Below, one piece after another: positions 52,772 through 60,684 of a stretch of 64,000 nt of DNA (the stretch's first letter is position 1; each line of letters begins with the position of its first letter). A program made the position numbers and the translations under genes. The notes beneath the pieces are model-generated. The model made no database searches, was not told the DNA's origin, and worked only from the letters and a program-made list of their open reading frames with translations. This DNA comes from Auanema rhodensis (Eukaryota > Animalia > Nematoda). The DNA lies in contig OZ059898.1 of assembly GCA_964057225.1 (NCBI GenBank), forward strand, positions 9,052,001 to 9,116,000. Reading direction: 5' to 3'.

Positions 52772-55100
52772 ATGACAGAAGAAGCCTACGTAATCGTGAA
52801 ATACGATTATTTAGCACAAGAAGAACAGGAACTCACAGTAAAAAAAAATGAAAGGCTTAGACTATTAGATGATAGTAAAAATTGGTGGAAAGTATGAGTT
52901 ATTAGTGATAGTATTAATTTTTCTATTTATTACAGGTGATAAATGACAATAATAAAATTGGTTTTGTTCCTAGTAATTATGTAAGACGAGAGTCATTAGT
53001 CGACAAAGCTAAAGGAACTATAAAAGGAATAACAGGAATTGGAAAACCGCGAGCTCCAGATTTTTCAACGGTAAGATAAATAATTTAAATATAAATAATA
53101 GCATTTTTATGAAGATTAATTCTAATAATGAAACTTTTGACTATAAAAATGTTGTTGAAGAGGTCGCAATGTACATGTCTCTTTAATTTTTGTTTGAAAG
53201 GTTCTAGCACACTCTCTGTTATCATGTGGCTTTTGAACAAACATTGCAAACCGTCCTCCCTAGCAAACTAGCTCACATCACCGTATAACTGCACTTTGTG
53301 CTCCAATCGGCATATGTATAATCAATTTTCCTCAAACTTTTCTTAAAAAATCTTTTGCACAGTCTTCTTTATAGTTACTTGCGGAACTTGTAAGCTTTAA
53401 TAATCTTGACCAGGCAGGTTTTCTCTCTTTCTCGAACAGTATTAGTTAAAAGTTGATGAAGTTTCTTTACGCCCTGTTTCATTACTTTTGTTGCTTGTAG
53501 ATACTATTATTTAAAAAAATCAAAGCAACTTCATCTTTATAGCTTCTGTGAAGTCATGTGTTTAAAATTGTTTTGTTTTTTTGTTGAAATTTTAAAACAT
53601 TTTTCTATTGTAATTTCACACGATGAGATTTATATTTTCTTGCTTTTGTTGTCGTTTTTGTATCATTCTATTGAAACTATTGTAAGCTTTTGTGACGAGC
53701 TCTTTTCGTCTAAAGTCGATCTCTGAAGAGCATAGGTTTAGCTTCTGCTGCTTATGTGGTTTTTTCGTTTATTTAAGATCAAGATCTATTTATCGCTTTT
53801 GCAGGAAGTCCCTTCCGCTTTCAATTCTCCTCCTGATCCCCGGCCGGTTTTCTCCACAAATAATAGCTACAACTCAAACGGAACCCAAGGTTTCGGAAAG
53901 GTTTGCAAATTTGGTTTCAAAATTAATTTTATATTTTATGATCATATTATCGATTTGATGTTTAACAAAGTCTTAATCATGCAGCGTCTCTTATCAATGT
54001 TTAAACCATTCATATTACAGTTATCCGGAGCTATGACATCGCGTGCCATAGTAAAGTTTACCTATGAACCACAATTAGAAGATGAATTGGGCCTCACACG
54101 AGGAGAAACTATCAATGTTATTGAAAAGAGCAGTGATGGGTGGTGGAAAGGAGAGGTTAGTTTACTTTTCAAATACTATGAGTCACGACTTTTTTTTAGA
54201 AAAACGGTGTAACTGGGTGGTTCCCTTCTAACTACGTTGACGAGGTTTTGTTTCAATATATGTTTTATATTATTTAGTTTTTTTTAGGAATTACCGAAAG
54301 CTATGTCTAATGGAAATGGAACTGTTGAAAATAAAAAGCCTCAAAATAATATTCCGGTATTCTCTCCTAGTCAAACTAAACCTGCTCCTTCTAAACAAGT
54401 TCTTGAGGTTTGTTACCTTAATTCTTTTTCTAAAAAGATTTTGTTTCTCAGACTGTTGTTGCTTTATATTCTTTTGATGCTTCTACTGGAGAAGAACTTT
54501 CTTTTCGCAAAGGTATTCAGCATTTTAATCGATACATAATGTGTACTCCGATATTTTAGGTGAGAAACTTGACATCGTTGGTCATCCTGCTCATGACCCT
54601 GAGTGGTGGATGGCCCTCAATTCACTCGGGCAAGAAGGATTAGTTCCAAGGAATTATATTGAAGTTTGTTAGTTTTTGTTCAATTGAACTGATTGATTTT
54701 TTTTCAGGTTATGTCAGGTTCTCCTTCCTCGACAGGTGTCGGCAGTCGTGGAGGCCTTCATAATGAAGTTTGGTATTTTGGTCGTCTAACGAGAGATGAA
54801 GCTGATTGTTTATTGATGAAAGGATTACAAGGAGAATTTTTAGTTCGCGATAGTGAAAGCACGGTACGATTTGCATACATTATCTAATGATAATTGAATG
54901 TTTAGCCTGGTGATTTATCAATATCAATGCGTGATATTGGAAGAAACAAGCACTTTAAAGTTCAATCTGTTAATGGAGAGTTACGAATTGGTACTCGAAG
55001 TTTTCCTGATATGAAAACTCTTATTGATCATTACAAAGTTCATCCAATATTCTCATCAGATACAGAAAAACTTCATTTAACAAGACCTTTGCCTAAATAA
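52772..55100 (+). CDS. nck-1: Nck adaptor (SH3-SH3-SH3-SH2), about 11 exons
   Basis: SH3-1 [15 protein letters not shown]...WWKV...GFVPSNYV; SH3-2 [15 protein letters not shown]...DGWWKGE...GWFPSNYV; SH3-3 [16 protein letters not shown]...HDPEWW...GLVPRNYI; SH2 WYFGRLTR...FLVRDSES...KHFKV. Ends RPLPK*. Confidence 0.96.
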
Positions 55101-55829
55101 TGCTGCTTTATGGAATACAAAATACAAAGGTTATTATCGCTCGTATTACAGTTGACCTAACTAGAGTTTTTATTTTTAACATGGCTCAGCTTTTCCGACT
55201 CGGTTATAACAATTCATAGGCAAATTCACTTTATATTTATATTCTTATTCTTTATATTTTTATTTATATTCTTTATATTTAAAGAATTTCTTATTCTTCC
55301 CAAGCGTACGGATCGTCCTGGCACAAAATTTATTTTCCCGTCCCAGATTGAAATGTTTTAACTACATCATTTACTCTTGACCAATCTTTTTCAAATGTCT
55401 GTGGTTTATATGTATATGTATTAACCTTATGTGCCATTATCTTGCAAATACCGATGAACCGTTTATTATTTACTTAATCAGTATATATAATCCGTATTGT
55501 AACGACAAATTATTAAATATATGAGAGAAGATCTAAAAAGAAACGATTTTTCGCAAGAAAATGGGCAATTGACTCTTAGTTGACTGATCAAAATAAACAA
55601 CGGATATCATGCATAAATTTCGAAGAAGGTAGACTTTGGAGGAGGGAATACAAGAAGTTGATGACAATATTGCAGCAACTTGGAAAGAAGTAGACATGAG
55701 CAAGAGGTTAAAATTGTATTTTATTGTTCATATAATGCTGATAGAACTTGAGAAAAGACACAACAATAGCACACTTTTTTGAGATGAAATATATAAATAT
55801 ATTGCATTTGTATGCACCATCATAAAGAT

Positions 55830-58800: not shown

Positions 58801-60684
58801 TCGGACGTTGTGGTCCATTGTGGCTCGACATTCTTTTCACTTGATGAGCACCAGCTTGTTCAAGAGCCCCAAGATTATTTTCTTGGATTCTTTGGAAACC
58901 CTTCCTCAATGTGTTATCCATTGGTATCATAGAAGTATTTTCAGCTTCTATAAACTCTCACATATACAACAGAAGTATTAAAATAATAAACCATTTCTAT
59001 GAGGCCCATTTGGCTTGGAATTGGGCTCATCATCATCGCTTCCAGAATACTCGTATTCAGTCTCATCTAGATGTTACAAATAAATATTTATTCCAATAGG
59101 AAAACATACCTTTTTTATTAATTCGTCTATGCTTATCAATGTGATCTTTGATAGAAATACGAACATTCCTTTCAAGTTGTTGATCTCTTATGAAAGGATG
59201 TCTGAGCAATTGATCAGTAAATGGACGTAAATTATAATCCTTCACAAGGACTGCCTCTGTAACAAAGAAACCAAATTAAGGAATAAAAATTTGAAAAAAA
59301 TACCAATAAAACTTTCAAATCGTTTAGACCATTTTTTGCTACTTCTCTTCAAGCGAGGTGGAGGATTTCGGGGAATAAGGAACAAAGCTCTCATAGGATG
59401 CATATCACATAATGGTGGATGTCCCTCAGCCATTTCTAAGCAAGTAATGCCTAATGACCACAAATCAGATCTAGAATCATAATTAGCATCAGCATTGTCA
59501 TCACAAGCTATAACTTCAGGAGCCATCCTAAACCAAGGCATGTTTTAATATATATTGAAAATTCATCGTACCAATACGGAGTTCCAATGAAAGTATTCCT
59601 TCGACCAACGGTTTTATCAAGCTGGGCAGAAACTCCAAAATCAACTAATTTCACTTCAGCGCTGTCAGTTAAAAGAACATTCTGTCCTTTAATATCGCGA
59701 TGAATTACTTTATTTTGATGTAAATGATATAACCCCTGAAGACCACAACTTTAAACCAAATTTATTTTATAAATATTTACTCTGAGAATTTCTCGGCAGA
59801 TATAAGCGATCCATTCTTCTTTGATAGAAGATCCTCTACTACTCTTTACCAGGTCCGTTACAGATCCACTACCGCAAAACTCCATAACAAGCCAGAGCTG
59901 ATCATGTTTTCCTGTGGAAGAAGGCAATTTCTTGATAAATGCTCCATAATAAGTGGCAATATTCCGATGATGAGAATACTGAAAAGAAAATTATTCTGTA
60001 TTTTTTGAAAAGACAAGATGAAATTAAGAATTTCTTTGTTCACACACAATCGTTATATTCGGGTTTAGCTAACTTGCTTCGGGGGGTGCTGACCGCGTCC
60101 ACCTCGAACTGCTCTATCAAATATTTGCTCGAAGTGGTCAGTTGAATACAACGAAACCACATCCATTATGCAATCTAAGTTCCTCCTTCTATCCTTCTCT
60201 CTACCTCCCTTTTTCTCTCTACCCTCATACTTCTTTTTTTGCTCTCATCTATCGCTGACAATATCTTGCAAACCACAAACCTTTAAATAAATAAAAATCA
60301 TCGATATGAAGAAGATAAATAGCTAGTTTCAGCATAAGATATTTTGAAATAAATCTAGCGCTTACCTTTTTGAGCATATTAATTTCTAACTTTATTTCCT
60401 CCTCCTCATCTTCATTAATATTCATAATCTTAATAGCAGCAAGTTGAGCTGTTTTGACATGTCGACCCTGAATTTTAAATTTTTTATAATTCCAATTATT
60501 GAAAATGAAGTTAAATACTAACTTTATAGACTTGCCCATAGGTACCATTTCCAACAACTTCAATTAGTTCAAAGATACCCGCTGGATCCTGTAATGCATA
60601 AAATATATTAAAATATTAAAATACTGTTTACTGTACCCTAAGGGCATTCAAGTCGATATCATCTAGGGCAGAGGTGTGGGCCAT
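55830..60684 (-). CDS. mig-15: STE20/GCK-IV kinase with C-terminal CNH domain (Misshapen/NIK/MAP4K4 orthologue), about 25 exons
   Basis: [64 protein letters not shown]; Pro-rich linker; CNH domain ending [26 protein letters not shown]. Confidence 0.98.
57531..57557 (-). CDS. mig-15: 27-nt in-frame microexon of mig-15 (ITSLFGSFY)
   Basis: TCTCAG|ATAACTTCTTTATTTGGTAGCTTTTAC|GTAAGT, phase 0-0, inside an otherwise unusually long intron. Confidence 0.75.
60074..60166 (-). CDS. mig-15: Candidate alternative first coding exon of mig-15 (31 codons) inside intron 3
   Basis: ATG-initiated and stop-free ([31 protein letters not shown]). It ends at CAA|GTTAGC, phase 0, matching the phase-0 acceptor of the next exon (starts 59978). 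An ACTTAG acceptor lies 8 nt upstream of the ATG. Confidence 0.55.

Follow-up and report, generated by a model that had tools for sequence, protein, structure and literature searches.

The genes for an Nck-type adaptor (nck-1) and a kinase of the MIG-15/Misshapen/NIK family (mig-15) lie tail to tail in Auanema rhodensis. Nck and NIK/Misshapen homologues interact in mammals and flies, and the juxtaposition raises the question of whether it is old or newly assembled, and whether it is a selected functional unit or a product of chance. We analyzed the 64,000-nucleotide window of contig OZ059898.1 (positions 9,052,001 to 9,116,000 of the forward strand; coordinates below are those of the window) together with RNA data and a set of 10 nematode species including this worm. 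Sequence and domain searches used single exons rather than joined protein models. The RNA data came from a single study (four runs) in the form of assembled contigs, each with one depth figure; such contigs carry no transcript ends, strand, or abundance.

The coding sequence of the nck-1 orthologue occupies 52772–55100 on the plus strand (10 exons, 388 codons plus stop), with the ATG at 52772, the TAA at 55098–55100, and the frames taken straight from the sequence. Its exons lie at 52772–52891, 52936–53070, 53805–53900, 54021–54155, 54200–54244, 54288–54407, 54452–54512, 54560–54663, 54708–54863, and 54906–55100, and all nine introns were seen as GT..AG joints in the RNA contigs. Three of four runs, X1, X2, and X3, gave contigs in which the loose letters (C)CAAGTTTG precede 52744, and we take these to be the closing letters of the nematode SL1 leader; the AG at 52744–52745 would be the trans-splice acceptor, after which the 5′UTR (52746–52771) starts. 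Pfam searches of the exon translations placed three SH3 domains at the N-terminal side and a single SH2 domain at the C-terminal side (SH3_1 from exons 1, 4, and 8; SH2 from exons 9 and 10), and the joints in the RNA contigs verified this exon order, which is the architecture of Nck/Dock adaptors. A search of the 181-Mb assembly with the last exon gave one match and no second copy, and its best library matches were nematode NCK-1 proteins, indicating orthology. The product shows 86% amino acid identity with that of Auanema sp. JU1783, 65–73% with other clade V NCK-1 proteins, and 69% with C. elegans NCK-1 over the aligned exons.

The mig-15 orthologue lies on the minus strand (CDS 55830–60684) as a continuous set of open frames that starts with the ATG at 60684 and reaches its stop at 55830–55832, the last exon being 55830–55913. 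Its 3′ introns were visible as CT..AC joints in the RNA contigs. One gene thus contains both Pfam Pkinase (exons at ca. 59066–60615) and CNH (exons at ca. 55830–57400) domains on either side of a proline-rich linker, which is the order of a GCK-IV Ste20 kinase. Its exon pieces were 79–100% identical to, and collinear with, a 1109-aa Pkinase+CNH gene of Auanema sp. JU1783. A CNH exon of mig-15 had one protein match in the genome. Separately, the Pfam CNH profile matched two further places in the genome. Two 176-nt exons of mig-15 were considered as a mutually exclusive pair, and this was rejected because both are constitutive by RNA-contig arithmetic.

The PxxP ligands that the preliminary description had noticed in MIG-15 proved to be exonic and conserved. 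The linker exon at 58128–58262 (minus strand) encodes PPPPAPPPR, and that at 57942–58082 (minus strand) encodes PNKPLPPTP, which includes KPLPPTP; both are identical in Auanema sp. JU1783. PAPPPR fits the class II PxxPxR core and is a predicted Nck SH3 ligand, this core being the preference of Nck SH3.2 and SH3.3 (PMC8187788). Like their mammalian and fly homologues, NCK-1 and MIG-15 of this worm would probably interact, through the Nck SH3 domains and the PxxPxR of the MIG-15 linker. A literature search found no report of a direct NCK-1/MIG-15 interaction in C. elegans, with a single incidental match.

The two genes are convergent, nck-1 ending at 55100 on the plus strand and mig-15 at 55830 on the minus strand, and the RNA contigs show GT..AG joints in the former and CT..AC joints in the latter. 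Pfam domains, frames, and RNA joints bear out the preliminary description of nck-1 and mig-15 orthologues as convergent neighbours, and its estimate of about 730 bp between the stops agrees with the measured 729 bp (55101–55829). The AATAAA hexamers it had named are also all present: the sole plus-strand copy at 55592–55597, a candidate nck-1 poly(A) signal, and the distal (55467–55462) and proximal (55725–55720) minus-strand copies. Three further minus-strand copies, absent from that description, lie at 55169, 55259, and 55329, and non-canonical plus-strand signals occur at 55512 (ATTAAA) and 55516 (AATATA). Since a 729-bp stretch at 33% GC should contain about one AATAAA per strand by chance, the hexamers alone carry little weight, and it is their conservation in Auanema sp. 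JU1783 that supports them.

This conservation is very uneven across the spacer. The nck-1-proximal part (55101–55445, plus strand), which is presumably nck-1 3′UTR only and is covered by RNA contigs, shows 58% identity to Auanema sp. JU1783, the level of introns; it contains an AT-rich short repeat at 55224–55281, and the spacer of Auanema sp. JU1783 has ca. 575 nt extra within this part. In contrast, the 384-bp block at 55446–55829 is 90.6% identical over aligned bases, compared with 77–85% for coding exons (85% for those of mig-15) and 49–59% for introns. Conservation ends ca. 12 nt beyond the distal minus-strand AATAAA, which is itself conserved. The plus-strand AATAAA at 55592 lies inside the block and is aligned with an AATAAA in Auanema sp. 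JU1783 (13404/13409) that is among the only plus-strand copies in the spacer of that species. The block is single-copy in the genome and matched no Rfam family, and its indels relative to Auanema sp. JU1783 are not multiples of three; these three results together ruled out a small RNA gene or a short ORF. Scans of metagenomes, one with a conserved UTR 24-mer and one with the last nck exon, gave nothing useful, only one distant 1.9-kb contig. Judged from the sequence, the block fits a constrained mig-15 3′UTR of ca. 385 nt on the minus strand, ending at the distal signal. The mig-15 3′UTR would then be conserved more than the mig-15 exons, suggesting that this migration kinase is under strong post-transcriptional control.

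Both genes are transcribed and spliced, and in each of the four runs one RNA contig, with all introns removed on both strands, was unbroken from 54905 to 55911 across both 3′ ends. This continuity indicates that the nck-1 and mig-15 transcripts meet or overlap, in line with the earlier suggestion that their 3′UTRs could overlap. If nck-1 ends, as is most likely, at the sole plus-strand AATAAA (55592), its 3′UTR may run ca. 165 nt antisense into that of mig-15, and the conserved poly(A) signals predict the overlap at about 55446–55612. No base differences of the kind that editing of an RNA duplex would leave were seen in the contigs, from which rare variants are, however, lost. In runs X2 and X3, loose contig ends at 53902 and 57841 matched neither the window nor the genome.

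The continuity could instead come from rare read-through RNA. The genes would then be neighbours with separate mature mRNAs, and low-level read-through or an artefact of unstranded k-mer assembly would account for the bridging contig. The nature of the contigs, with one depth figure each and neither ends nor strand, is compatible with this, and short isoforms could dominate since the proximal minus-strand AATAAA and the plus-strand ATTAAA and AATATA are present. However, the conserved block extends exactly to the distal minus-strand signal, which argues for use of the long mig-15 UTR, and with the mig-15 end at ca. 55446 any plus-strand signal that would link the contigs sits downstream of it. 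An identical continuous piece was also obtained in all four runs. We therefore consider separate mature 3′ ends unlikely.

How far the arrangement extends among nematodes was assessed in the 10-species set, which has Oscheius, Heterorhabditis, and Rhabditella outside it. The preliminary description had proposed mapping the adjacency across nematodes, and wide retention was not seen: among the nine other worms the tail-to-tail pair was present only in Auanema sp. JU1783, where nck-1 (plus strand) is followed after 1290 bp by the convergent 1109-aa Pkinase+CNH gene. The other eight species, C. elegans, C. nigoni, Nippostrongylus, Necator, P. pacificus, M. spiculigera, A. viteae (Acanthocheilonema), and B. 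xylophilus, represent six lineages (Caenorhabditis, Strongylida, Diplogastridae, Mesorhabditis, Spirurina, and Tylenchina), and in none of them was a mig-15 exon found inside 10 kb of nck-1. An assembly artefact was ruled out, since the RNA contigs and the independently assembled genome of Auanema sp. JU1783 give the same layout. The latter is collinear with the window from 43 kb to 63 kb (at least 20 kb), with COesterase/nlg-1 and Mpv17 upstream of nck-1 in both. Because this whole 20-kb neighbourhood is collinear, the shared adjacency is uninformative on selection, and across distant lineages of the 10 species adjacency was not kept beyond general collinearity.

The preliminary description had left open whether the linkage is ancestral or newly assembled. 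Its presence in Auanema sp. JU1783 and absence from the eight others make a recent, lineage-specific juxtaposition the simplest reading, and the ancestral half of that proposal finds no support in this species set. An ancestral linkage would mean that the two genes already adjoined each other early in the history of rhabditids or of nematodes, and that most lineages later parted them independently. In humans, NCK2 shares 2q11-q12 with MAP4K4, and NCK1 shares 3q with TNIK, co-locations that would suit an old chromosome-scale linkage. The position of NCK2 is given as 2q12 (PMC8187788). In C. elegans, nck-1 and mig-15 are both on X (PMC12714349 for mig-15), and with the closest outgroups outside the set, an older origin followed by several losses can be envisaged. 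The same chromosome does not equal adjacency, however, and the absence of the pair in eight species of six lineages needs at least five independent separations versus one gain, so that ancestral adjacency appears rather improbable. As to C. elegans, the expectation that its two genes are both on X but megabases apart held for the chromosome and, with nck-1 at X:4.149-4.153 Mb, to the extent that mig-15 is not inside 10 kb of nck-1. Because both are on X there, a within-chromosome shuffle is enough to have joined the pair.

We therefore favor, with a probability of about 0.68, a recent rearrangement, in an ancestor that this worm shares with Auanema sp. JU1783, that produced neutral adjacency with overlapping 3′ ends. 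The rearrangement would have been intrachromosomal, within the X-type element, and would have put nck-1 and mig-15 tail to tail in that ancestor. Roughly estimated, any two genes of an element with ca. 2,800 genes adjoin with a probability of ca. 7e-4; with thousands of known interacting pairs per element, chance alone should make a few of them neighbours in each genome. The adjacency is thus most likely a chance product rather than a selected functional unit, neutrality being the default assumption, and neither the 10-species comparison nor the RNA contigs gave evidence of selection for the juxtaposition.

Alternatively, the overlap may link adaptor expression to kinase expression, whether by transcriptional interference, by double-stranded RNA or endogenous siRNAs, or because UTR elements are masked, with the arrangement maintained for that coupling. 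RNA contigs bridge both genes in all four runs, the overlapped stretch is ca. 90% conserved, and the sole plus-strand AATAAA lies within the mig-15 3′UTR block in both species, a position compatible also with selection on the overlap itself. Convergent pairs, moreover, predominate among sense-antisense pairs of worm and fly and are the class most often conserved between species (PMC1524920). Yet 55613–55829, the part of the block outside the predicted overlap, is equally conserved, so mig-15's own UTR constraint accounts for the conservation. Retention is expected without selection when collinearity with the sole sharing species spans all 20 kb, the genes are separate in eight other species, and editing-like differences did not appear in the contigs, from which rare variants drop out. 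Such selected coupling therefore seems quite unlikely. The stricter proposal that the antisense overlap is a selected device tying adaptor dosage to kinase dosage, for example via double-stranded RNA, via endogenous siRNA, or by each transcript masking UTR elements of the other, with part of the strong conservation of 55446–55829 reflecting dual use, is in our judgment very improbable. If the overlap were functional, it would provide a compact natural case in which RNA-level coupling joins two signalling proteins that interact, and one open to testing in worms amenable to genetics. Under the favored neutral reading, the locus illustrates how adjacency of interacting genes can come about by chance via the fast within-chromosome shuffling of nematode genomes.

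Each gene resembles its known counterparts. C. elegans nck-1 (ZK470.5), vertebrate NCK1/NCK2, and Drosophila dock likewise encode three SH3 domains and then an SH2 domain in ca. 390 aa. As in ZK470.5, there is one long early intron, which could give room for an internal promoter of a shorter isoform; a 286-aa product is known from the C. elegans gene. ZK470.5 differs in its genomic neighbours, without mig-15 inside 10 kb. The order of kinase, proline-rich linker, and CNH is shared by C. elegans mig-15 (ZC504.4), misshapen, NIK/MAP4K4, TNIK, and MINK1, and the PxxPxR in the linker resembles the Nck-binding motifs of mouse NIK, PCPPSR and PRVPVR (Su et al. 1997, tabulated in PMC8187788). Nck binding is known for homologues in the NIK family, whereas for MIG-15 of this worm it is predicted from the motifs. 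As in convergent cis-natural antisense pairs, two opposite-strand protein-coding genes meet at their 3′ ends, with the difference that contigs and conserved poly(A) signals, rather than mapped transcript ends, are here the basis of the predicted overlap. Unlike the partners of typical pairs of this kind, nck-1 and mig-15 encode proteins whose homologues bind each other.

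The nck-1 coding region (52772-55100, + strand; stop codon 55098-55100) consists of ten exons whose translations, with frames read from the sequence, match SH3, SH3, SH3, and SH2 domains in this order. mig-15 extends from 60684 down to 55830 on the - strand (stop codon 55830-55832), its exons match protein kinase and CNH domains, and its product ends in ...LNKPGLSNW. The last nck-1 exon and, at the protein level, the mig-15 CNH exon each gave one match in the 181-Mb assembly, and the Pfam CNH profile matched two further places in the genome. Against a library of 1.8 billion proteins, the top matches of the last nck-1 exon were nematode NCK-1 proteins, and C. 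nigoni NCK-1 as a query retrieved a wide range of named NCK-1 orthologues from nematodes, including the products of C. elegans ZK470.5. Compared exon by exon, the NCK of the window shared 86% identity with its Auanema sp. JU1783 counterpart and 65-73% with orthologues from strongylids, Caenorhabditis, Pristionchus, and Mesorhabditis, which indicates that the window organism and Auanema sp. JU1783 are fairly closely related. The public model of Mesorhabditis belari (P0006, 609 aa) fuses NCK with a SET domain, probably by merging two adjacent genes in annotation. At 734 nt, intron 2 of nck-1 (53071-53804) is longer than the remaining eight, which measure 42-120 nt (42-47 nt in six cases). Since C. 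elegans has an NCK-1 product of 286 aa (P0266), intron 2 may hold an internal promoter that drives a short isoform without the first SH3 domain.

Four runs of one study, available as contigs and labelled only as guessed RNA, were compared with window 52600-58500. Each run yielded one contig of ca. 5.3 kb over both genes, from which all nine nck-1 introns (GT..AG joints) and the mig-15 introns (CT..AC joints) had been spliced out. The contig of three runs starts with the letters (C)CAAGTTTG, the 3′ terminus of the SL1 leader, directly before the AG at 52744-45. The removal of introns together with the SL1 letters indicates that these data are RNA. On this assignment, the nck-1 mRNA is SL1 trans-spliced with a 5′UTR of 26 nt (52744-52771 region). 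Contig ends of 160-255 nt at 53902 and 57841 (runs X2 and X3) matched no part of the window or of the assembly as a whole and may represent chimeric contigs or sequence absent from the assembly. In all four runs, the contig was unbroken from 54905 to 55911, covering the last nck-1 exon, the entire spacer, and the last mig-15 exon. Thus, nck-1 and mig-15 are both expressed and spliced as modelled, and their transcription units meet. The convergent tail-to-tail arrangement proposed in the preliminary description is real, as seen in both the RNA contigs and the second species, Auanema sp. JU1783.

The two stops lie 729 bp apart, in agreement with the gap of ca. 730 bp described previously, and all the reported AATAAA hexamers are present: 55592, the sole + strand copy in the spacer, and 55462-67 and 55720-25 on the - strand, where three more copies occur. 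At 33% GC, chance alone would yield about one AATAAA per strand in the spacer; therefore, these hexamers alone are no evidence. Use of 55592 by nck-1 would produce an antisense 3′UTR overlap with mig-15 over ca. 55446-55612, consistent with the bridging contig. The bridge could possibly be rare read-through RNA instead of overlapping mature mRNAs, because the contigs carry no transcript ends, strand, or level and their continuity fits both. We regard the 3′UTR overlap as probable.

In a global alignment of the window with the Auanema sp. JU1783 locus, identity was 77% in the nck exons, 85% in the last seven mig-15 exons, 49-59% in introns, 58% in the nck-proximal spacer (55101-55445), and 90.6% in the mig-15-proximal spacer (55446-55829). 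The latter block ends sharply ca. 12 nt past the - strand AATAAA at 55467-55462, the expected place of a cleavage site, and is read as a strongly constrained long form of the mig-15 3′UTR. A coding function was ruled out by its indel lengths (1, 2, 3, 4, 5, and 11 nt). No second copy was found in a genome search, and no Rfam family matched the block. The + strand AATAAA at 55592 sits within the block and aligns with AATAAA copies of Auanema sp. JU1783, there too among the sole + strand copies of the spacer. Conservation was equally high in the non-overlapped part, so the overlap is not required to account for it. A valuable by-product is a putative 384-nt mig-15 3′UTR conserved above coding sequence. 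The nck-1-proximal spacer of Auanema sp. JU1783 contains ca. 575 nt absent from the window (12697-13272 of L002, its nck-1/mig-15 locus), with ca. 38 nt duplicated at the edges. Another non-coding block of ca. 110 nt (61285-61395), lying ca. 600 nt 5′ of the mig-15 ATG, is 89% identical to L002:19049-19159, had no Rfam match, and may be a promoter or 5′UTR element.

The genomic context of nck-1 was compared in ten species. In Auanema sp. JU1783, a convergent 1109-aa Pkinase and CNH gene lies 1290 bp downstream of nck-1 (+), and the carboxylesterase (neuroligin-type) and Mpv17 genes upstream are ordered as in the window. The mig-15 exon pieces of the window were 79-100% identical to this locus, and collinearity extends from ca. 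43 kb to 63 kb of the window; at this evolutionary distance, any neighbour pair over these ca. 20 kb would show shared adjacency. Called genes and tblastn with all 14 mig-15 exon pieces detected no mig-15 within 10 kb of nck-1 in Nippostrongylus, C. nigoni, P. pacificus, M. spiculigera, A. viteae, Necator, B. xylophilus, or C. elegans. Near P. pacificus nck-1, the only similarity, weak and of a generic kinase type, was to a gene with two kinase domains and no CNH. C. elegans nck-1 is located at X:4.149-4.153 Mb, and mig-15 presumably lies near X 10 Mb. The earlier placement of both genes on X holds (for mig-15, PMC12714349), and their separation, given as megabases, was confirmed as >10 kb. 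Among the species compared, the adjacency is thus shared only by Auanema sp. JU1783 and is most simply explained by a single gain in the Auanema lineage. Ancestral linkage with later separation in other lineages is less simple, requiring at least five separate losses. Of the two origins suggested previously, the newly assembled one stands, and the ancestral one is not supported, given the absence of the adjacency in eight other species.

Both genes are on the X-type element, and nematode chromosomes show a high rate of internal gene-order shuffling. By our rough estimate, two given genes among ca. 2,800 on one element are adjacent with a probability of ca. 7e-4; with thousands of interacting pairs known whose members share an element, chance alone should place a few of them side by side in each genome, and reading window after window will turn up such pairs. 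Functional coupling of nck-1 and mig-15, raised previously as possible co-regulation, finds no support and is quite unlikely. The earlier interpretation holds only in a weaker form, as a neighbourhood that was newly assembled, is restricted to this lineage, and probably involves 3′UTR overlap.

The PxxP ligands attributed to MIG-15 are both exonic (58128-58262, containing PAPPPR, and 57942-58082; - strand) and identical in Auanema sp. JU1783. The 45-nt intron between these exons (58083-58127, - strand) is in frame and stop-free, and its retention would add 15 residues between both SH3-ligand motifs. Binding of NCK-1 to MIG-15 in A. rhodensis would be expected from the protein family; a literature search found no report of direct binding in C. 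elegans. PAPPPR matches the class II PxxPxR core, which is the preference of Nck SH3.2 and SH3.3, and is similar to the PCPPSR and PRVPVR motifs of mouse NIK (PMC8187788).
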